Shown here: piece by piece, positions 2,901-54,526 of the stretch | Numbering within the stretch: position 1 is the stretch's first letter | Layout: every line of letters begins with the position of its first letter | Source: Podarcis pityusensis | Taxonomy: Eukaryota | DNA length: 64,000 bases | Strand: one strand, 5' to 3' | Assembly (NCBI GenBank): GCA_964106645.2 | Contig: OZ067044.1 | Notes under the pieces: model-generated | Seen by the model: the letters and a program-made list of their open reading frames with translations, nothing else | The model's database searches: none | What the model was told of the DNA's origin: nothing | Position numbers and translations under genes: made by a program

Positions 2901-3304
2901 AAAGAAACAATGTCCTCCATTTCACCCATCATGTATGGCATATTGTAAGGCTTAACGATAATTGTAGTACAAAATGAAGTGGTGAAAAAGGAGTTAGTGT
3001 GCGCTACATACTAGACAATACCTTCTGTTTTCCTCCCAAAATAGCTAGTTATATCTTTTCAGCATGGAACGTTGTTTTCCCTATTATCCCTTTCCTTTCT
3101 AAGAAGTGTTCATTTTGAAGACAGCGACAAAAGGGAGACAAGGTCATCTTCTAACATACAAATTCTTAGGATGGTAGAACCTCCCTACTATTCCAGCAGA
3201 AATTTTGCTCTTACGTTGCAGTTTCCAGGGACCTTAAACATTGCATTGACACAAATGTTTAGCATTGGGGAAGCCATATTCTATTAATGAAAATTAGATT
3301 ACCG

Positions 3305-10200: not shown

Positions 10201-10255
10201 CAAAATGTCATGTTCCTGTGACCATTTTATTTACTTGGTTGTAAACATTTGATAA

Positions 10256-10617
10256 GGGACGCGGGTGGCGCTGTGGGTAAAACCTCAGTGCCTAGGACTT
10301 GCCAATCGCATGGTCGGCGGTTCGAATCCCCGTGGCGGGGTGAGCTCCTGTCTTTCGGTCCCAGCTCCTGCCCACCTAGCAGTTCGAAAGCACCCTTAAG
10401 TGCAAGTAGATAAATAGGTACCGCTTTCTAGCGGGAAGGTAAACAGCGTTTCCGTGTGCTGCGCTCTTGCTGGCTCGCCAGAGCAGCTTTGTCACGCTGG
10501 CCACGTGACCCGGAAGTGTCTCCGGACAGCGCTGGCCCCCGGCCTCTTAAGTGAGATGGGCGCACAACCCTAGAGTCGGACACGACTGGCCCGTACGGGC
10601 AGGGGTAACTTTACCTT
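10256..10617 (+). mobile_element. Sauria SINE (full length)
   Basis: tRNA-like head with A box (tggcgctgtgg) and B box (ggttcgaatcc); BovB-type tail gagtcggacacgact; (ACCTTT)-type end; 14-bp TSD taaacatttgataa at 10242-10255 and 10618-10631. Confidence 0.93.
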
Positions 10618-11257
10618 TAAACATTTGATAAATTGCATCAGCCAAATGGAATATTTACTTTCAGAAATTGATGACTTTATTTCCTGAGAGTGTGTGACCT
10701 CTCATGCATGTATGTAGAGCAGGCTATTGTTTTTCTCTGGTAAAGTTAGTTTTCTCAGTCTGTTTTGCTAAGAGAAGTGAACTTCACGTAAGCCTTCTGC
10801 TTAGGTAGATACTTAATGGTGGTTATACCACTATGACAAAATCTTGTTGTAAGTGATTATTACATGACAAAGCAGTAAAGCAGTTTATTACTAGAAGCTG
10901 TAAATTATATTCATTGTGTTGTGTTTGAGTAGCATTCTTTTGGCATAATGTGTTCAGCTCTCAACCAGTAATCTGAGAACGGACCTATATATGGCCAACA
11001 GAACTAAGTTACCATTAATACTCTTTGTATTAACTTGTCGGAGAGCATATCCTCTTCCAGTGCATATGGTTTATCATTGATAATTTTACTTACATGTTGA
11101 CTTCCAGTGCAGTAAAATTACTGCCTGCAGGCCCATTTACAGACCACAAATGACTAGAGAATAAATAATATTGCTAGTATGATAATCTCTTACAGTTGGT
11201 ATTTGGCTTTCCTGTGATATAGCAGCAGTGGAAGTTTCTGTTAGCAAGATTCAAGTA

Positions 11258-11756
11258 CAGTGGTACCTCCGGTTACAGACACTTTGGGTTACACAATTTC
11301 AGGTTATGGACCGCAGGAAACCCGGAAGTACAGTGGTACCTCGGGTTAAGTACTTAATTCGTTCCGGGGGTCTGTTCTTAACCTGAAACTGTTCTTAATC
11401 TGAAGCACCACTTTAGCTAATGGGGCCTCCTGCTGCCGCCGCACTGCCGAAACCCGATTTCTGTTTTTATCCTGAAGCAAAGTTCTTAACCTGAAGCACT
11501 ATTTCTGGGTTAGCGGAGTGTGTAACCTGAAGCGTATGTAACCTGAAGTGTATGTAACCCGAGGTACCACTGTACCGGAAAGGGTTACTTCCGGGTTTCG
11601 CTGCATGCGCAGAAGTGCTAAATCGTGCATTGCGCATTTGCAGAAGCGCCAAATCGCGTCACGTGCATGTGTGGACGCAGCGCTGCAGGTTACGAACGCT
11701 GTGGGTTGCGGACGTGCCTCCGTCACGGATTATGTTCGCAACCCGAGCTTCCACTG
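11258..11756. mobile_element. Tc1/mariner-pogo-type MITE (outer element, interrupted by a nested MITE)
   Basis: TA|CAGTGGTACCTCCGGTTAC ... GCAACCCGAGCTTCCACTG|TA: imperfect TIRs with TA target duplication. Confidence 0.85.
11331..11572. mobile_element. Tc1/mariner-pogo-type MITE (inner, nested)
   Basis: TA|CAGTGGTACCTCGGGTTA ... TAACCCGAGGTACCACTG|TA: perfect 18-bp TIRs; internal aacctgaag repeats. Confidence 0.92.
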
Positions 11757-28106: not shown

Positions 28107-28913
28107 CCTTTTATCTAGCATATGACTCTGTGTGTGTGTGTGTAGACATTGCCTATCAAGCTCTTAGAAAGTGGCTTTTGGCAGCCTTTATGAAACACAC
28201 ACAACACCAGAGAGACAACGGAGGCAATCAAACTGCCTCACCTGCAAAAAAATTGTCTGGAATACATACATACATATACATAAATATACATATGTGTATA
28301 TTTTAAGATGCTGCTGGCATGTTTCTCTCCCCACCCCCTCTAATAGTGATGAATGCCAACAGAAACTGAGCCCTAAAGAAGAAGTGATGTTACACTATGC
28401 TTGGAGAAAGTCCAAGGATTGCAAAAGTACAGAAAAGTCATATGCACACCTAAGGGGCACCCCCTTCCCAAATACTGCACAGTAAGGACTGAGCATGCAC
28501 AGTAGCCAAGAAATGTTGAGTGGCAGCAGGAAAAGAAATACAAAACTGAGAACAGGGAATGGAACATCCCAATTCAACCTCATACGGTTTATAGCATCCT
28601 GGTGGAAAGCATGGCTGGTTGTATAGAACCCCATTTCTGTTAGGTGTTGCATGTCTCATTTGTTAAACTAATTATCCAAACAGTTGTCTCTTCTGTACTG
28701 TCTCATTTTGCCATGTGGCCAGTGTTCCTTTCCTTTTGTAAAACGCTTCCCTCCAAGAGATGATGCCATAGCACCTAGCCACAGGGAGCATTCTAGCAGC
28801 TTTTCACAGGAACATTATCTAGTGTGGGGTCTGCCTGCTTCTATGGGCTTTGGGGGATCCTTTCTTAAACAGTGAGTTCTGTATTTTTCTGAAAGTATCC
28901 AGACTGTACAGTA

Positions 28914-29136
28914 CAGTGGTACTTCGGGTTACATACGCTTCAGGTTACAGACTCCGCTAACCCAGAAATAGTGCTTCAGGTTAAGAACTTTGCTTCAGGA
29001 TGAGAACAGAAATTGTGCTCCGGTGGTGCAGCAGCAGCAGGCCCCATTAGCTAAAGTGGTGCTTCGGGTTAAGAACAGTTTCAGGTTAAGAACAGACCTC
29101 CGGAACGAATTAAGTACTTAACCCAAGGTACCACTG
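28914..29136. mobile_element. Second copy of the same MITE, inverted relative to 11331-11572
   Basis: TA|CAGTGGTACTTCGGGTTA ... TAACCCAAGGTACCACTG|TA; body is the reverse complement of the 11331 copy. Confidence 0.92.
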
Positions 29137-32100
29137 TACTATCAATTATGCCTTCACGTAGTCTAGGACACTGGTTAATGTTACAGTGTTGCTGCTGCAT
29201 AGTGCGTGGATCTCTCTGGTGTTTAGAAACATGATTTAGATTATGGGAAGGCTCCATGAGAGAAAAAAATAGTGGGTCTTGGAGAAGTCAGAACTTTAAA
29301 ATCCTCAGTACCCATTCCTGTCTCTAATAAGCAGTTTGCATTCCTGTATCTTGTGCTCTGACCCTTATCTGTTCTTTACTGGACTAAGAGTTCTGACATG
29401 GAGAAGGATGACTACATTATTTCAAACTGTCTGTCAAACTGTACATGGGTCATTGTTTGCCGTCTTCTACCTCTCCCCTCTCAAAAAACTTGGTTTGGGG
29501 ACTTTTGCAGACGTGAAATCCTGAAAACCCACATTAAAGTTCTGTTGATTTAGTATCAAGAACCTTTATTGCTAAAAATGTGTGAGATTTACCATAAAGC
29601 AATGTGAAGAATAAATGGTTCCATTTATCGCATTTAAACCTTTAGTGCTTTTTTTTACTTTTGCACATTACTGAAAATAAAGCATTTTAGAAGCTGCTTA
29701 GTTCTTTTCGAATTGAAACATTTGAATATATGTATTTATATTTACCGTAGCCAAGTGCATTTAACTTTCTGTTTGTATATACACAAACCCATATAGACAA
29801 TTGTGCATACTTCAAATATGTCCCCCCCCCCCTTTACTATATATTGAACAGCTTATTCTAGGAGAGTAGGCTTAGTCTAATAATGACATTCCCTATGTGG
29901 ATGAAGAAATTGTGCTATGAACTATTAAAGAGATTAGTTTTTGTTTAGAAGTGGCAAATTTATTATTGCATCTTCTGATAGTGTTCTATCCTACTTGGTA
30001 GAGAACTAAACTGTTTTTTCTTGAAATACAGTTAATATACACATCTCCCCACCCCCACCCCTTTGCCATCTTTTCATTCACCTCCACTGCCTCTCAGTTT
30101 ACTCTGGCAGAGGCCTAAGTAAAGTAAACCATGTGCTTTTGTGCTGTCATATTTGATTTGGACTATATTCTCACTGTTATTTGAAGCTAACATGAAATGC
30201 AGTGTCTGCATGACCCATTTTAGCAGCCCATTATCATAATTTCACTCTCATATGGCTACTGAGTTAATGTACTTACAAATGACAGAGAAAGCATGTTACA
30301 TGACCTTAAGGGTTTTCAAAAATTAAATGACGTAGTAGGTTATATTTCAAAGAATGGCTAAAGAGAACATTTTTAATTATTATTTTTTGCACCTTAAGGT
30401 GTCACTGGTTAGCATGGCAAACGGTATTTGTGCGTGTGTTAAATATGTGAACGTATAAGCTTTATCAGAATCTGCATTCCATAATTCACTCAAAGAAATT
30501 TTGGAAGATTGATTTAAAAATGGTTCCAAAAAGAGGTTGTTGTTGTTTTGTAATTGCCTAATGCTTTACATTTCTTCATGTAGGGTAGAGGTGGCTTTTT
30601 TTTTTTTTGGTAATGTTTCAGTTCATAGTTGTTACGGTGATATTCAGCTATGTTTTACTCAGAGTAGACACACATTCATTTAATTTCAGTAGATCCACTC
30701 TGAGTACAACTTTGCTGATTAAGGGCGGTATTCAACTAAGTTTGAAATTTGTTCATGCACAAAGTATAAAGCCCTGAAGAATTACTGAGACAAGATTTTG
30801 GAGGCTGCCATATAATGGATCCTATTATACGATGATGATTCTTCAGCAGCCTTGTATTGAGCAACTTTCTTGGCAGCCATAGATAACAAGGGATTTCATG
30901 CAGGGAAATACGCAGCCTGGCAAGAGGAGGTAGCAATCTCTCCTTCCCTCTTCCACCCATGTGCTAGGTCTCTCTGCTACCTGGGGCTGGATGAAGGAAC
31001 ACCTCCTAAGCTCTTTCCCTTTCCACCAGTCCTCTTGCTAGAAGGATTTTTTTTTTTTTTTTACTACCCCACTGATAGGCTACGGTTCTGCATTCCCATC
31101 ATGGTTGTGAAGGAGAGAGCTTCCCTTCTTCTGTAGCCAGCATGAGAACGGCAGAACAAAGACTGTGGGCTAATAACTTTCATGGATTTATTTACAAGAC
31201 TGCTCTTGTAAATATTTACTGTTTATTTACAAGAGTCATTATTTCACAGTGAAAGTATGCATGTATTCATGTAGCATTTGGATATGCATCCTATTTTAAG
31301 CATACAGGATTAGCATTTTATCAGGACATAGAGGCCTATTTGGCTTTTCAAATGGAGAGTCCTTGCTGGGTTTTGGTGAAAGGCATCAGTTGTGAATTAC
31401 TGAAGTGTTTGTCTATGCATGTGTGTGTGCGCGCACACACAAACATATGGAATGAGCACAAAATTTGGGGTGGTTTCCAGCTAAGTTTTACTGAGAGCAG
31501 ACCTACTGATGTTAAATGAACCTCAGGCATGTTCATTAATTTGACCGGGTCTGCTCTGACTTAGTTGGCTACCATCCATGGAGTCTGGATACCTTTTCCC
31601 GATATTTACGTATTTAAGCCAGCAGTGGTATTTTTTTTGTACTCTTAAACAGTAAAGATCTTTGTTCCTGTGGAACTAGCTACTCCAGAATTACTCCAGA
31701 GCAAGCAAATAGTTCATGGAGTACAACCTGAAGCTCCATGGAGAAGCTCTGCCGCTTTCTTGTCACTGGTGCAGAATAATTTGATAAATTTACAAGTATC
31801 TTCATTATTAGTCATTGGCACTAATAAGACTAGGGAAAGATAGAAATGCAAGCATGTTTTCTGCCATCAGAAGCTGTAGCATTTAGCTAAAATTAGAAAG
31901 TTGTATGTAAAAGTTTTGAGGGTGGAGTGGTGGCAGAAAATGCTGCAAGGACAGAATGAAAAAGATCCACTTAAATTATGTTTCAACTATCCTGTATTCT
32001 AATTCTTACAGCAGGGTTGGGCTATTGTCATGATGTAAGCTATTGTCTTACCACTTTCCAGCTTGATTCCTACTGTTGGATAAATGCTGGAGGAGATAAG

Positions 32101-32729
32101 TGCAATGAGTGGTGAAACCCTTCTTGCACTCGCAGATGATTTATTTATTTCCTTCCACGTATATCCTGCCTTTCCCCAAAAAAGATGCACCCAAGGTGGG
32201 ATACATGTGGTTCCCAGGTTGTCATTAAAAAACTCCAAATGCCAATAACCATAAAAGCACTTTGGCTGCAATTGTGAACCTCACTGAATTCAATGTAACT
32301 TATTTCTGAGTAGACGTGCAGTAGAATTGTATTGTCAGTTTCCGTCAAATAGTTCTGTGGAGGGTTGTCCTGCTGCTGTGAGCAGTTTTTCAGGGAGCAC
32401 ATGGAACCACAGTAGGAATCAGAGGCCCAAAGAGCTTCTGTACAAGGATTCACCTTCAGATCTTAGCCATATTCAGTTATGTATTCAAGGATTTTTCAAA
32501 GTACATATGATGCTAAATGCATCACATTCTTCTATGTGATTTTTTTTTAAGAAGTACAAATCTTCCAATACAAAATCTTGCAGCAGTAAGTTAAAAGATT
32601 TCATTGATTTAAGTTTACCAAATTGGTTTCTTTGGCTGGTTAGCTTTGGTCTTGTTATTCTGCATTCGTTGTATTTAACAGTCATTAGAAGTGATGGTGG
32701 TTGCATACAGAACTGCCCCAAAGATCTTA

Positions 32730-33085
32730 TCTATGTAGAAGCTTTACACGATGGGACACCATATTTAAAAGACTCTATCCTGCATGCCATTGTTGCCAAC
32801 CCATTTATGCTTTTATATACCCTTATATATGATGTATTACAGAGGCCAAACTGGCCTCAATGAGAAATTGGGCATTTAGTGTCACCAGTCCCATTCTGTG
32901 GAACACTCTTCCAGCAGAGATTTAGCAGGCACCCTGTTATTATTTTCAGGCATCTCTTGAAGACCTTTTTGTAACTGTTTACATTTTTGATAAGTCAGTC
33001 ATTTTAATTATCTTTATTTTTACAGTTTTTATGGTGTTTTATATTTTATTGTTTATATTGTTGTGCACTGCCGTGTTGTATGAAC
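32730..33085 (+). mobile_element. Degenerate L2-type LINE 3' end (host of the PLE insertion)
   Basis: cccattctgtggaacactcttccagcagagatt (PILWNTLPAEI) ... ttgaagaccttttt followed by a T-rich 3'UTR. Confidence 0.55.
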
Positions 33086-33099
33086 TGGTGGTATATAAA

Positions 33100-33319
33100 A
33101 TAAAAAAAATCCTTCCAGTAGCACCTTTAAGACCAACTAAGTTAGTTCTTGGTATGAGCTTTCGTGTGCAAGCACACTTCTTCAGATCTGAAGAAGTGTA
33201 TCTGAAGAAGTGTGCTTGCACACGAAAGCTCATACCAAGAACTAACTTAGTTGGTCTTAAAGGTGCTACTGGAAGGATTTTTTTTATTTTGACTATGGCA
33301 GACCAACACGGCTACCTAT
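33100..33319. mobile_element. Penelope-like element (PLE) terminal-repeat fragment arranged as a perfect inverted repeat
   Basis: Arms 33097-33187 and 33200-33290 are exact reverse complements. Direct repeat ctggtggtatataaa at 33085-33099 and 33320-33334. The motif ctgaagaagtg..cacgaaagctcatacc..ggtcttaaaggtgc resembles reptile PLE ends. Confidence 0.75.
33198..33235 (+). ncRNA. Minimal type-I hammerhead ribozyme motif (PLE-type)
   Basis: GUAU(33198-201)-CUGAAGA(33202-208)-A-GUGUG/cuug/CACAC(33210-223)-GAAA(33224-227)-GC-UC^(33230-231)-AUAC(33232-235). Stem I is GUAU:AUAC, and palindromic AGCU replaces stem III. Confidence 0.7.
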
Positions 33320-33378
33320 CTGGTGGTATATAAATACTTGTATAAATAACATATCAGTTTGCTGCAGCAAAAATGCCA

Positions 33379-33465
33379 GAGTCTTGCGGCACCTTAAAGA
33401 CTTAATATACCGTATGTTATCGTGGCATGAGCTTTTGTAAACTAGAGCTGACTTTGTAATATGCA
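33379..33465 (-). mobile_element. Older degenerate PLE terminal-repeat fragment with decayed hammerhead
   Basis: Reverse complement reads tgcat....aagt...ac aaaagctcatgcc....agtctttaaggtgccgcaagactc, the same layout as the adjacent element but with the CUGANGA core lost. Confidence 0.55.
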
Positions 33466-35091
33466 GTTGGTAAAGGGGGTGTATGTGTGTGCATGTGTGC
33501 ACAGAGGAAGCAGTTTGGCCAAAAGATCATGAATGCTGGTGGTATCAATGGGCCTGAAGATAGGGGCAAAGTGATCCATTCGCAGCAGCTGTCATTGTGT
33601 TGATGCTATGTGTTTAGCTCCACCACACTCATTTTACATTAGTAGTATGCCAAAAAAAAAACCCCAACCCTAACCCAGAGTCCTGATTAAGTCTGAATTG
33701 AATTGAATTGAATCCAATCTGCTGATCAAAGTCTAGCCATTTCCTGCTGTAGAATGTCACATATATGTTAGCAGGACCTGCACACCAATGCAGTATCTGG
33801 CTGAACAAAGAATTGCTGATATGAACCAAAGATTTTCTGTCTTTTTGGAAATCTTGCTATGGCTGTTGTAGAGTTACCTAGTGCTGGAAGTAACAGAAGT
33901 CATAGGTGGGAATGGGGAGTATGATGTAGTACTGCAAAAATAGAATAAAACCAGTGTTCCCAATGGATGTGGTTACAGATTGAAGTGCAAAATATGGTTA
34001 CCCTCTGTTTCATCTTTTCCAATATTTCTTATTTTATTTTTTAAAGATCAGATGGAGGGGGGCACAGGGATCTACAAAATTAAAATTGATCAAATTGGAA
34101 TACGTAGCATTTAGGGAGAGTGGGAATTGATGTTTCCAACATATTCTTTCACTTAGAGTACACAGTTCATTCTGCATGCTTATATTGACGCCCATTATGT
34201 TTAACTCCTTTTCCCTTGGTCCCTATACTTGGGTGAGAAGATTATATCAAGATTTGCAGGCATTCCATATTTGACGATGGAAGGTTTTGTGATTTCATTT
34301 TAAATGCTGCATGGTATTATTCCTCCTAATTGGAATACGTTGCACAAACTAAAAGACAGGAGTCGGCAGTGTGTCTTAATAAGTTTGAGGGTAAGGTATG
34401 CAGTGTACCGTTTTCTTAAACCAATTTGCTCTGTACAGTGATTCTCAGCATGTAGCTTTTATGAAACCTAACCCAGTAATGTACCAGATGTGGGTCTCTT
34501 GGAGATTAATATAGAAAAATGTAAGCCAGAATCCGAACATAGATAGTCCCTCACACCGAGCAGGGCTTAGGGTGTATGTTTCCACAAATCCAAAGCCCTG
34601 GTCTCCAAACCAGTTCAAAATTCAAGCGGGACTGGATTGAACACCTGGCGTCAACACCTGGTGACCTTGGGCACCTAGAATCCTAGCAAGTTGCACTTCT
34701 GCTGCTTGCCATGGCTCCCCTTTAGAAACATTTCCAGCCCCTTGCTGCAAGCTGTCTCAGGTGGTTAGGTAAGCCATCACTTAAATTTCCACAATGTCCC
34801 AAAATACTGGCACACTGTAGGAAAAATAAATGGCAGCAAGATCCAGCCTCCTTGGCACTGTTATAACCCTGGTGCTCTCTGCTAGGTTATCCTTCCAGGT
34901 ACTGCTGTTGGAGAAGCCCACCAGAGCACACTGTGCGCAGGGTTCTCCAAACTTGGAGTCAGTCCTGAATTTAGAGAGATTCAGAAGTAACTTGGCATGT
35001 GATTAAGGTATAGAGCTCTGCTGTTCAAAGGGGGTGGGGAGCCCCACTGTGTAGACTCCAACTCTCCAGTGCAGCTATATCCATCATAGTA

Positions 35092-35261
35092 ACTCAATAA
35101 TGACTTAAGTCCATTGATTTCAATAGGTCTAGTCTAGTAACAGTCAGTGTGGAACACTACTGGTGTTAAGGATCTAATTCAACAATGACTTAAGTCCATT
35201 GATTTCAATGGGTCTAGTCTAGTAACAGTCAGTGTGGAACATTACTGGTGTTAAGGATCTA
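35092..35261. repeat. 85-bp tandem duplication (2 units, 4 mismatches)
   Basis: Units 35092-35176 and 35177-35261. Confidence 0.95.
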
Positions 35262-37767: not shown

Positions 37768-38059
37768 NNNNNNNNNNNNNNNNNNNNNNNNNNNNNNNNN
37801 NNNNNNNNNNNNNNNNNNNNNNNNNNNNNNNNNNNNNNNNNNNNNNNNNNNNNNNNNNNNNNNNNNNNNNNNNNNNNNNNNNNNNNNNNNNNNNNNNNNN
37901 NNNNNNNNNNNNNNNNNNNNNNNNNNNNNNNNNNNNNNNNNNNNNNNNNNNNNNNNNNNNNNNNNNNNNNNNNNNNNNNNNNNNNNNNNNNNNNNNNNNN
38001 NNNNNNNNNNNNNNNNNNNNNNNNNNNNNNNNNNNNNNNNNNNNNNNNNNNNNNNNNNN
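37768..38059. other. Assembly gap (292 N)
   Basis: Run of N. Confidence 1.
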
Positions 38060-48794: not shown

Positions 48795-50314
48795 GGCTCC
48801 CCATACTTGGGATTGTTCCTTTTGTATTTCTCTTTTTTGACAGCTGTTTCAACATTTTAAAAAATGAGCTATTCTTTAATTTTGCACTATGAATGATGTC
48901 ACTGGGTTGGTGGGGGTATGTTTAATGCTATTTATATCCGACCATGCATCATTTCAGATGCATAAATCTTAATGCTTCTTAAATTAATGTTGTGATAACA
49001 GCAACGCTAATAAAAAGAATCCCCTGTCAATTTGTACCATCGTTTACATTTCAGCCTTTCAGTAATGGGTAGAGGAAAGCATATTTGCCCAGTGACTAAT
49101 TGTTCTTACCTTACTTTCAAATCCAAGTGTATATTCTAGCTCAGTTGCCATTATTGCCAAGGTGCTCTATTGGACTATCCATCTTGGAACTCTGATACGC
49201 AAGTTCAAATTTATCTTCAACCATAGATTGCTCTAAGGCTGCTTATACAAACTTAACAGGAAGTAACTCCTATAAGCTCAGTGGGACTATTGGAATAAAT
49301 GTGATTATTCATGTTAATGTCTCTGAGCCATCTGTAAAATAACAATAGTAGAGGTACCATTGTGTGCTTTACATGTAAGAACCCAATGTTTTGGGATGCT
49401 TCGAAGTTGGGAATCCAGGAGAGAAAGTGGCAGTGTGAGATGATTGGCTGGGAAGAAAAGGTTTGTCAAGAGCAATGGGATGCTGAGACTTGCTTCATGG
49501 GTGGGAAAGGAAAGGCGGAACTGGAAGAAGATGGATCAGGTTCTAAGCCAATTAGGAAAATTCTGGAACAAAGATCTTTGAAATGAGTGGTACTGGGACT
49601 TCTTGATCATCTGTGTGACTTGAGATCAAGGCACTGGATGTATAGGGGTATTTTCTAAAATAGAAAGGGAGATATAGAAGGAAGATAAAAGTTTCACAGG
49701 ATTGCTTTTGTGAAGTAAGGTGATGACTCTTTGTGTATGAAAGATTCCCAGCTTCTGGAGCCCAAAGCTTCAGCTTTTGTGCTCAAGTTGGGGTTTAATG
49801 ATTAAAATAAAACAAAGTCTAAAATCTTGTCTGGCTGAGTAAGAATGGGTGTAACACATTCTGAAGTGGTGATAGCCTGGAAGTAAACTTGCGGACGATC
49901 TTGTTTCTTCCCAGCTTAGCAAAACAAACAAAAGGTTAGAAATAAACAGGCAACTGAAGACATTAGCTGCCAGCCAGGTCTTCACAGCAGAACCTTGGGG
50001 TTATGATTTGCCAATTTAATAAACAATATCCAGGGATGGCCCAGGAGGTCAGGGTTGGAGACAACAGGTATATCAGAGGGTTGATGATTTTGTGCCAAAT
50101 AAGAGAGCATTTCATAGAAGGTGCTACCCCTGGCCCTTGGAAATGAAAGAGGCTTCTCCTGTGTCTTCCATTTCTAAACTTAGCCTTCCTCTATCAAAAT
50201 TAATCAAAATTAGGGCTATTTCATAACACCACTCACAAGGTTGTTTGGAAGGAAAAATATATAAACATTTCAAATCATTGTTCACATTAATGGACTAATA
50301 TAAGTAACAGTAAA

Positions 50315-50679
50315 GGGACGCGGGTGGCGCCGTGGGTAAAACCTCAGTGCCTAGGACTTGCCGATCGTATGGTCGGCGGTTCGAATCCCCGCGGCGGGGT
50401 GAGCTCCCGTCGTTCGGTCCCAGCTGCTGCCCACCTAGCAGTTCGAAAGCACCCCTAAGTGCAAGTAGATAAATAGGTACCGCTTTCTAGCGGGAAGGTA
50501 AACGGCGTTTCCGTGTGCTGCGCTCTTGCTGGCTCGCCAGAGCAGCTTTGTCACACTGGCCACGTGACCCGGAAGTGTCTCCGGACAGCGCTGGCCCCCG
50601 GCCTCTTAAGTGAGATGGGCGCACAACCCTAGAGTCGGACACGACTGGCCCGTACGGGCAGGGGTACCTTTACCTTTTT
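50315..50679 (+). mobile_element. Sauria SINE (full length), second copy
   Basis: About 11 substitutions relative to the 10256 copy; 14-bp TSD tataagtaacagta at 50299-50312 and 50680-50693. Confidence 0.93.
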
Positions 50680-51269: not shown

Positions 51270-51308
51270 TTCTGTAATGAATTTTTATTTTCTTATGTAT
51301 TTTTCTAG
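51270..51308 (+). promoter_or_regulatory. Polypyrimidine tract and 3' splice acceptor of TSHZ1 intron 1
   Basis: T-rich tract 'aatttttattttcttatgtatttttctag' ending in AG directly before the conserved in-frame coding sequence. Confidence 0.92.
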
Positions 51309-53321
51309 CTTATGTTCCTGAGGAAGAACTGAAAGCAGCAGAGATTGATGAAGACAGCGTGGAGGATGACGGACTACCTCTGGACATCCAGGAAACTGAC
51401 TACATGTGCAATGATGAAACGGAGATCAAAGAGGCTCAAAGTTACCAGAACTCTCCAGTCAGCACAGCAACGAATCAGGACGCAGGTTATGGGTTGCCAT
51501 TCAGCGAAAACAGTGACCAGCTGGCTCATTTCAAAAGCACTTCCTCCAAAGAAGAGAGAGAAGATCACCAATGCTTGGACAATGCTTCCTATCCACAGGA
51601 CAGCTTGGCACAAATAAAAGCTGTCTATGCAAATTTACTATCGGAGTCTTGCTGGTCTAGTTTAGCTTTGGATTTAAAAAAATCAAAGAGTAATGAAAAC
51701 AGCCAGAAGGAAAATACCACTAATAGCAACTCTACTATCACTACCCCAAGTACCAATACTAGTACTAGTACCAGTACTAGTACCAGTACCAACACTAGTA
51801 TCACTACAAGTATCAGTAGTACTAGTAACAGTAACAATAACAGTGGTGGCTCAGGTTATGACTGGCATCAAGCGGCATTAGCCAAAACTCTGCAGCAGAC
51901 CTCATACGGACTTCTCCCAGAACCTAGTCTATTCAGCACAGTGCAGCTTTACCGGCAAAACAATAAACTGTATGGTTCTGTGTTCACTGGTGCCAGTAAG
52001 TTCCGGTGCAAAGACTGCAGTGCAGCATATGACACACTAGTGGAGCTAACAGTGCACATGAATGAAACTGGACATTATCGGGATGACAACCGAGATAAAG
52101 AAGCTGAAAAGACCAAACGGTGGTCAAAGCCCAGAAAGCGATCGCTTATGGAAATGGAAGGCAAAGAGGACGCCCAGAAAGTGCTCAAGTGCATGTACTG
52201 CGGCCATTCGTTTGAATCTTTGCAAGACTTGAGTGTCCACATGATAAAAACAAAGCATTACCAGAAAGTGCCTCTGAAGGAACCAGTACCAGCCATCACC
52301 AAACTGGTGCCTTCTACCAAAAAGCGAGCACTTCAAGACTTAGCTTCACCTTGCTCACCTGAGCCGACGGCCATCACTTCGGAGAGCACACTTAGCGAGG
52401 CAGGGAAGGACCAGAAAACTGCCAACCCCTATGTGACTCCAAACAACCGCTATGGCTATCAAAATGGTGCTAGCTACACTTGGCAGTTTGAGGCCCGCAA
52501 AGCCCAGATCCTAAAATGCATGGAGTGCGGCAGTTCTCACGACACTTTGCAGCAGCTGACTGCTCACATGATGGTCACGGGACATTTTTTGAAAGTAACT
52601 AATTCTGCTTCCAAAAAGGGGAAACAGCTAGTATTGGATCCTGTGGTAGAAGAAAAGATCCAGTCCATACCTTTGCCTCCCACCACACACACGAGATTAC
52701 CAGCTGCAAATATTAAAAAGCAGCCCGATTCTCCGGCCGAATCTACAACTTCTGAGGAGAAGAAGGACATGGAAAAGGAAAAGGTGATCGTTAGTGAAAC
52801 AGACAAAAAGATTAAAGAAGAGAATGAGGACTCTGCGGAAAAATTTGAGCCAACGGCTGTGTATCAGTACCTCAGAGAGGAAGATCTAGATGAAAGCCCT
52901 AAAGGTGGGATAGATATATTAAAATCCCTGGAAAATACAGTGACAACAGCTATAAGCAAGGCCCAGAATGGAGCACCTTCGTGGGGAGGCTATCCAAGCA
53001 TTCATGCAGCTTACCAGCTTCCGGGGACTGTTAAGCCCATTCAGCCAGCTGTGCAGAGTGTTCAGATGCAGCCATCGTACGCCAGCAGCGTAAAATCCTT
53101 GTCTTCGGAACACAGTGCACTGATCCATTCGCCAGGGAACCTGACGCCACCACCTCACAAAAGCAATGTCTCTGCAATGGAGGAGCTAGTGGAGAAGGTC
53201 ACGGGCAAAATCAATATAAAAAAAGAAGAAAAGCCTGCAGAGAAAGAGAAATGTTCTCCAGTCAAGCCATTGTCACCTGCTGCTAAGGAGAACAAAGACT
53301 TTCCAAAATCAGAGGAAACCA

Positions 53322-53355
<34 letters not shown>

Positions 53356-54526
53356 GCAGCAGCAAAAAAAGGGCCCTGAAACAGAAGTGCAGAAGGTCAA
53401 GAAGGACAGTCCAGCAGATCCTCATGCACTTAACGGTACCGAGCTACCTAAAGCAAAAGTCACAAACGGCTGTAATAACTTGGGCATCATCACAGACCAT
53501 TCAGCTGAGCCATCATTCATCAATCCACTGAGTGCTTTACAATCCATCATGAATACCCATTTAGGCAAAGTTTCCAACCCTGTAAGTCCTTCTTTGGACC
53601 CTTTGGCTATGTTATATAAAATTAGCAACAGTATGCTGGACAAACCCATTTACTCGACGACTCCGGCCAAGCAAGCTGATGCTATCGACCGGTATTATTA
53701 CGAGAACAGCGATCAGCCTATTGATTTAACGAAGTCCAAAAACAAGCCCCTGGTTTCCAGCGTGACTGATTCGGTCTCATCTCCTCTGAGGGAAAGTGCC
53801 CTGATGGATATTTCCGACATGGTAAAGAACCTCACAGGGCGCTTGACCCCCAAGTCTTCAACACCGTCTTCCGTGTCAGAGAAATCTGACGCGGATGGGA
53901 GTAGCTTTGAGGAGACGCTGGACGAACTGTCACCAGTACACAAGAGGAAAGGTAGGCAGTCCAACTGGAACCCTCAGCATCTTCTAATCCTTCAAGCCCA
54001 GTTTGCTTCTAGCTTGAGGGAGACTCCTGAAGGCAAGTACATTATGTCGGACCTAGGCCCACAGGAGCGGGTACATATCTCTAAGTTTACTGGTCTTTCC
54101 ATGACCACAATTAGCCACTGGCTGGCCAATGTGAAGTATCAATTAAGGAGGACAGGTGGAACTAAGTTTTTAAAGAATTTGGACACAGGTCACCCTGTTT
54201 TCTTTTGCAATGATTGTGCCTCTCAGTTCAGAACTGCTTCTACGTACATAAGTCACTTGGAGACACATTTAGGGTTCAGTTTGAAGGACCTGTCCAAATT
54301 GCCACTAAATCAGATTCAAGAACAGCAGAATGTTTCAAAAGTCCTCACAAATAAGACTTTAGGCTCACTTGGAATTGCTGAGGAGGACTCAGGCTCCACA
54401 TTCCAGTGTAAGCTCTGTAACCGAACTTTTGCAAGCAAGCATGCAGTGAAACTGCACCTTAGTAAAACACATGGCAAGTCCCCTGAGGACCATCTGATCT
54501 ATGTAACTGAGTTAGAAAAACATTAG
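51309..54526 (+). CDS. TSHZ1: Teashirt homolog 1, large terminal coding exon (exon 2); N-terminal ~13 aa exon lies upstream of the window
   Basis: 1055-aa open frame. It extends 5' in frame to the acceptor ttttctAG|CT TAT GTT CCT GAG GAA ((A)YVPEEELKAAEIDE, the start of TSHZ exon 2, phase-1 intron). It contains C2H2 fingers (CKDC..HMNETGH, CMYC..HMIKTKH, CMEC..HMMVTGH, CNDC..HLETH, CKLC..HLSKTH), a PIDLT CtBP motif and an atypical homeodomain (KRKGRQSNWNPQHLLILQAQF...HWLANVKYQLRR). The sequence matches my recollection of TSHZ1 rather than TSHZ2/3. Confidence 0.97.
51716..51843 (+). repeat. Coding low-complexity Ser/Thr/Asn tract built from AGTAC(T/C) hexamers
   Basis: agtaccaatactagtactagtaccagtactagtaccagtacc... 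encoding STNTSTSTSTSTSTNTS. Confidence 0.9.
53324..53365 (+). repeat. Coding trinucleotide repeat (CAG)4 CAA (CAG)8 CAA = polyQ14
   Basis: Read directly from the sequence, in frame in TSHZ1. Confidence 0.98.
53717..53731 (+). other. CtBP-binding PxDL(S/T) motif (PIDLT)
   Basis: cct att gat tta acg in frame; established teashirt co-repressor motif. Confidence 0.85.

Follow-up and report, generated by a model that had tools for sequence, protein, structure and literature searches.

A perfect palindrome in TSHZ1 intron 1 of Podarcis pityusensis is very probably a recent, 5'-truncated insertion of an abundant Penelope-like retrotransposon

Introduction

Truncated insertions of Penelope-like retrotransposons (PLEs) have been described with an inverted 5'-truncated copy and a tail of 30-40 bp at one end (PMC8557442), and also with an inverted pLTR that is 37 bp shorter, a 31-bp tail, target-site duplications (TSDs) and palindromes at the junction (PMC3846280). 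The one-sided tail is a hallmark of PLEs (PMC8557442, PMC3846280, PMC11167929). In Anolis, the PLE protein cleaves AT-rich DNA on both strands and extends both, and the tail is bounded by two RT start sites (PMC11167929). The hammerhead of this element (Poseidon_Ac or PAc, from Anolis carolinensis) depends on the element's protein; insertion in vitro proceeds without the hammerhead, and no RNA ends were observed at the hammerhead site (PMC11167929). Reptile PLEs carry minimal hammerheads (min-HHRs), including close pairs on opposite strands; cleavage of monomeric min-HHRs was not detectable and that of dimers was weak (PMC4209133).

The locus described here lies in a 64,000-nt stretch of the Podarcis pityusensis genome (contig OZ067044.1, hereafter the window). 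It shares with the truncated EN+ insertions of Penelope/Poseidon and Neptune (PMC8557442 Fig. 2, PMC3846280) the head-to-head inverted copy, the one-sided tail of ~30 nt, the TSD, the AT-rich target, the palindrome or microhomology at the junction and the pLTR hammerhead. However, the copy here is extremely short, its ORF is gone and its arms are still 100% identical, and the TSD is 15 bp long compared to 8-10 bp in the rotifer examples and 12-15 bp in the reptile stubs of Table 1. PAc (PMC11167929) is alike in having a tail between two RT start sites, cutting of both strands and an AT-rich target, and a PAc-type gecko stub has the same architecture and sits in the same intron as the insertion here. 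PAc differs in the sequence of the terminus and in the palindrome, which is ACGU in PAc and AGCU here; additionally, the PAc ORF begins inside stem II, whereas a start codon is absent at that place here. No essential difference was found from the min-HHR (PMC4209133): the motif has the full core, the extra nucleotide after position 9, the G10.1-C11.1 pair, a stem II within the 5-6 bp range, a 4-bp stem I and a palindromic 15.2-16.2, and stem III is absent, with cleavage here being a prediction from sequence. Animal non-LTR retrozymes (bioRxiv 10.64898/2026.07.22.740005) resemble the locus in being non-coding, in the type-I hammerhead and in their origin from PLE pLTRs. However, the units of retrozymes are arranged head to tail in tandem and can form dimers, and the assignment to this class was rejected because the locus is a single head-to-head stub with no head-to-tail tandem.

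Results

The host gene is TSHZ1 on the plus strand; its 1055-aa ORF (51359-54526) shares 98.9% identity with the protein of Podarcis raffonei. TSHZ1 exon 1 is outside the window, and the placement in intron 1 is by colinearity with the gecko gene: positions 1-51307 of the window are colinear with gecko TSHZ1 intron 1, with conserved blocks to the left and right of the site. This places the insert in an intron, with its hammerhead on the transcribed strand, which upholds the position given in a first-pass annotation of this DNA. The insertion falls outside the conserved blocks of the intron. The exon contains a CAG-rich run at 53303-53361.

Self-comparison of the window confirmed the perfect 91-bp arms and 12-nt spacer of that annotation: 33097-33187 and 33200-33290 are 100% complementary over 91 nt, and they are the sole perfect inverted repeat of such size within the 64 kb window (Table 1). 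No second copy of the young arm was found elsewhere in the window. The predicted fold of the palindrome is -175.9 kcal/mol (z = -26). The spacer, reported to repeat the start of the arm, belongs to a 14-nt tandem duplication (33186-33199 = 33200-33213), and an inner 13-bp fold-back without spacer is centred at 33186/33187. The exact 15-bp direct repeat at 33085-33099 and 33320-33334 has a chance probability of about 4e-6 for two 40-nt boundary zones. A feature absent from the first-pass annotation is the 29-32 nt tail (33291-33319/22). Two head-to-head element ends stand in an AT-rich site, one with a tail of ~30 nt and one without.

Table 1. Features of the insertion, its surroundings and comparable stubs in other reptiles
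Feature	Position	Strand	Remarks
Left TSD copy, 15 bp	33085..33099	+	Last 3 nt common to inverted arm; single in X12 empty allele
Inverted PLE terminus copy, more truncated, without tail	33100..33187	-	Hammerhead core present, stem I broken
Junction: 13-bp spacerless fold-back at 33186/33187, then 5-nt microhomology (33195-33199)	33186..33199	+	
Sense copy, 5'-truncated PLE terminus (pLTR end and tail), high-copy family	33195..33322	+	
Minimal type-I hammerhead, no stem III, palindromic AGCU	33198..33235	+	Predicted cut after C33231
One-sided tail, 29 nt (32 nt counting 3 nt common to right TSD)	33291..33319	+	PLE hallmark
Right TSD copy	33320..33334	+	Exact 15-bp repeat; X12 empty site
Older decayed PLE terminus, same broad type, separate	33350..33464	-	Covered by contig 9 of X12
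TSHZ1 large coding exon (host gene)	51308..54526	+	ORF and protein comparison
Gecko stub, Poseidon-type, TSHZ1 intron 1	L001:53490-53704		TSD 12, arm 68, spacer 30
Natator stub	L008		TSD 14, arm 74, spacer 25
Carettochelys stub	L009		TSD 14, arm 68, spacer 9
Caretta stub	L010		TSD 15, arm 44, spacer 53

Four read runs of related lizards were compared (X1, X4, X12 and X21, the last as raw reads). The search for empty-site alleles was successful in X12, where contig 9 (5,870 nt) joins 32400-33084 directly to 33320-34000, with the junction at letters 3272 to 3273 of the record and one copy of the 15-mer left. An empty site with a single 15-mer indicates a true insertion of 220 nt plus a 15-bp TSD, in agreement with the TSD first proposed. 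The older terminus at 33350-33464 is present in the empty allele and is thus not part of the young insertion; the young copy landed 15 nt from this old relative. In the two closest runs (X1 and X4), contigs break at both sides of the insertion site. Just left of the insertion, at 32832-32939, there is another multi-copy repeat with high depth in all runs. At position 33886, 9 extra letters are present in X1 and X12 and not in X4, and from this difference the species of X4 may be the closest to the window.

The arm is matched by thousands of contigs in three of the runs, and the fourth has an arm depth of about 270 raw reads compared to 0 on the unique flanks. For a genome of about 1.4 Gb this would amount to some 2,800 copies or more, an approximate value derived from a capture library. 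Upstream of 33195 the family sequence continues in every run (X21: 63 reads, 0.89 agreement), so the copy here is 5'-truncated and 33195-33199 are natural letters of the family; loose ends before 33195 in 4/4 runs show the match between these upstream letters and the 5-nt microhomology. Ends of family sequences are concentrated behind 33291 and behind 33322, on either side of the tail. Minority letters at 33216, 33243, 33258 and 33259 are mirrored in the left arm; where checked, they make up 29-46% of the depth in X1 and 0.4-5% in X4, X12 and X21. As both arms carry the same minority letters, the hairpin was made from one young template, and judged from these letters the insertion is the product of a young subfamily. 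The very recent date first suggested is borne out by the young-subfamily letters and the empty allele of X12.

An element-by-element check agreed with the earlier description of a full hammerhead core on the sense strand and a broken stem I on the antisense strand. Stem I is formed by 33198-33201 and 33232-33235 and stem II by 33210-33214 and 33219-33223, and the core consists of CUGAAGA (33202-33208), the extra nucleotide at 33209, GAAA (33224-33227) and AGCU (33227-33230). Stem I of the minus-strand motif is broken, with 2 bp. The motif at 33198-33235 fits the description of min-HHRs (PMC4209133). An Rfam search gave no hammerhead match, as expected for a motif that lacks stem III; Rfam miRNA and sRNA matches were rejected since they scored below the gathering score and reflect the hairpin alone. 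Paired changes were found in stems I and II across the reptile copies, with 8 cells changed on both sides, and 75% of cells were paired compared to 25-42% in slid controls, although 11 related sequences give this comparison modest power.

Many copies of the family start exactly at 33198, which is the start of stem I. Upstream of stem I, a branch-point-like motif, a pyrimidine tract and CAG are present in lacertid and turtle copies (L009:76420-76442), and together these resemble a 3' splice site bordering the ribozyme on its 5' side, as has been reported for Drosophila virilis Penelope (PMC4209133).

Around TSHZ1, head-to-head stubs flanked by TSDs and bearing a one-sided tail were found in the gecko and in three turtles (Table 1), where this architecture arose independently. 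The termini in turtle, skink and gecko are homologous to the arm of the window. The tail and ORF start of the gecko stub resemble those of PAc. In two sea turtles, palindromic stubs occupy a matching position 3' of TSHZ1 (L008:69128-69359, with arms 97% complementary, and L010:70538-70774). If these two are orthologous, hairpins of such kind can persist long.

Discussion

The data presented here make it very probable that this locus holds a 5'-truncated, dead-on-arrival insertion of a PLE abundant in lacertids, made recently by a young subfamily. The PLE origin proposed at first is supported by the terminus, the minimal hammerhead, the one-sided tail and the inverted-copy architecture. The locus also has the insertion features of EN+ PLEs: a TSD with an empty allele, an inverted 5'-truncated copy, a tail at one end, a minimal hammerhead in the pLTR, and a dispersed high-copy family with variable 5' truncation. 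The parent PLE is presumably of the Neptune-type clade, a probable assignment that serves as a lead only. Motif scans of the window and eight reptile loci revealed no remnants of RT or GIY-YIG ORFs, and a 30-aa Poseidon-type peptide from gecko used as a query returned two uninformative proteins and no full ORF. As no RT and GIY-YIG ORF was recovered with this exact terminus, hammerhead, tail, terminus and architecture are what remains, and membership in the PLEs is based on these four features. When metagenome and viral contigs were scanned for DNA patterns, the outcome was either no match or chance matches to bacteria and phages (L004-L007).

The structure of the junction suggests how such an insertion could be made. 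The GIY-YIG endonuclease would nick both strands 15 bp apart, and reverse transcription would begin at two PLE start sites, one at the end of the tail and one about 30 nt inside. Two RT start sites fit a right copy that ends with the tail and a left copy that is about 30 nt shorter. Synthesis would then halt just past the hammerhead, followed by a brief fold-back of 13 bp, and the two cDNA ends may have been joined via the 5-nt microhomology, a step read from one junction. A switch across these 5 common letters, to where the sense copy naturally has its 5' end, would produce the 14-nt duplication. This order of events at 33186-33199 is inferred, and self-priming (PMC3846280) is an alternative origin of the fold-back.

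The first-pass annotation went further and proposed a discrete, non-autonomous hairpin family with a unit of ~220 nt. Such a mini-element, SINE-like or retrozyme-like, would be transcribed, and the PLE protein would move it in trans as a unit of constant size. It is known that mobilisation in trans is possible for pLTR sequences on their own (PMC3846280) and that retrozymes stem from PLE pLTRs (bioRxiv 10.64898/2026.07.22.740005). Also, a spacerless junction with two extra letters behind 33185 reaches a depth of about 2,100-2,500 compared to about 26 for unique DNA (X1, X12), and X4 has an 89-nt contig identical to the arm with a depth of 297 compared to about 5. However, this recurrent junction is not the junction found here, and it occurs also in a species nearly without the young subfamily. 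Young-subfamily letters are present in both arms here. The first-pass annotation had itself named differing inversion breakpoints as the mark of ordinary truncated insertions, and the left-to-right arm joints listed have different breakpoints in 14/14 cases, with another 103 joints lying outside the listing. In X21, position 33188 is covered by 5 of about 366 raw reads at arm depth (about 1%). Additionally, the family extends upstream, neither a promoter nor a tandem arrangement was seen, and the sizes of the other reptile stubs are all different. A discrete mini-element is therefore very unlikely, and the proposed family is not supported, as copies in related lizards have their fold-backs at many different positions.

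A few fold-back junctions near 33185-33190 recur at tens of copies. The recurrent 33185 junction may represent either a hot spot or a minor lineage of re-mobilised hairpins. A broader idea, that junctions at the 5' edge of the hammerhead recur because short hairpin stubs are re-mobilised in trans as a non-autonomous family, or that perfect intronic hairpins feed siRNA/ADAR silencing of the young master element, is speculative and improbable.

It was also proposed that the hairpin is a selected, self-silencing arrangement, in which the sense hammerhead would otherwise cut TSHZ1 pre-mRNA and only shielded intronic copies survive. The sequestration part of this proposal agrees with folding predictions. 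The hammerhead fold can be imposed only at a cost of about 52 kcal/mol, and complete pairing of the core with the left arm is predicted as soon as the transcript extends to 33215, when the cleavage site has yet to be transcribed. The stub in TSHZ1 pre-mRNA is thus predicted to fold into a 91-bp hairpin in which the ribozyme core is trapped. Retrozymes of Xenopus are depleted from introns (bioRxiv 10.64898/2026.07.22.740005), and in other reptiles several intact stubs are antisense to TSHZ1, though in a small sample. However, sequestration need not be adaptive. Intron 1 of TSHZ1 in Anolis sagrei contains an unshielded, TSD-flanked Poseidon-type stub on the sense strand (L012:45283-45404, plus strand) with the full hammerhead core and one mismatch in stem II. 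Given that lone minimal hammerheads barely cleave and that this unshielded copy exists, self-silencing is unneeded. By analogy with the monomeric min-HHRs (PMC4209133) and the protein-dependent PAc hammerhead (PMC11167929), the ribozyme would have next to no activity unless a partner or the element's protein were present, and most likely the insert is carried in TSHZ1 as a neutral passenger. The insertion, which is absent in a close relative, is also too young to show persistence. Selection for self-silencing as the reason for persistence is therefore extremely unlikely.

An assembly or library fold-back artefact has next to no probability: no listed contig crosses the palindrome in X1 or X4 and assemblers are troubled by complex PLE insertions (PMC8557442), but the inversion is confined to element sequence, the TSD is perfect with an existing empty allele, the tail is one-sided, and the same architecture is present in four other reptile assemblies, and two turtles (L008, L010) have one such stub at corresponding positions.

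The hammerhead in this PLE insertion is simply part of the pLTR, and the combination of palindrome and mini-ribozyme is the usual footprint of PLEs in reptiles, not a new mobile element. Nor does the locus suggest that TSHZ1 is regulated by the insert. Taken singly it carries little weight, being one among thousands of PLE stubs with an architecture that has already been described, and its use is that of a clean, young case for which the empty allele exists and the junction can be read. Stubs collected genome-wide could test how PLE insertions are completed, including the two RT start sites and self-priming versus priming on two strands, and stubs could also act as presence/absence markers in lacertid lizards.

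Other repeats were observed in the window. Two 300-nt copies that are 97% identical (10254-10553 and 50313-50612) represent a young dispersed repeat, and related elements at 11250-11582 and 28904-29140 have short terminal inverted repeats and are likely small DNA transposons. The window has an N gap at 37768-38059, and an 85-nt tandem duplication with 95% identity is located at 35090-35259.
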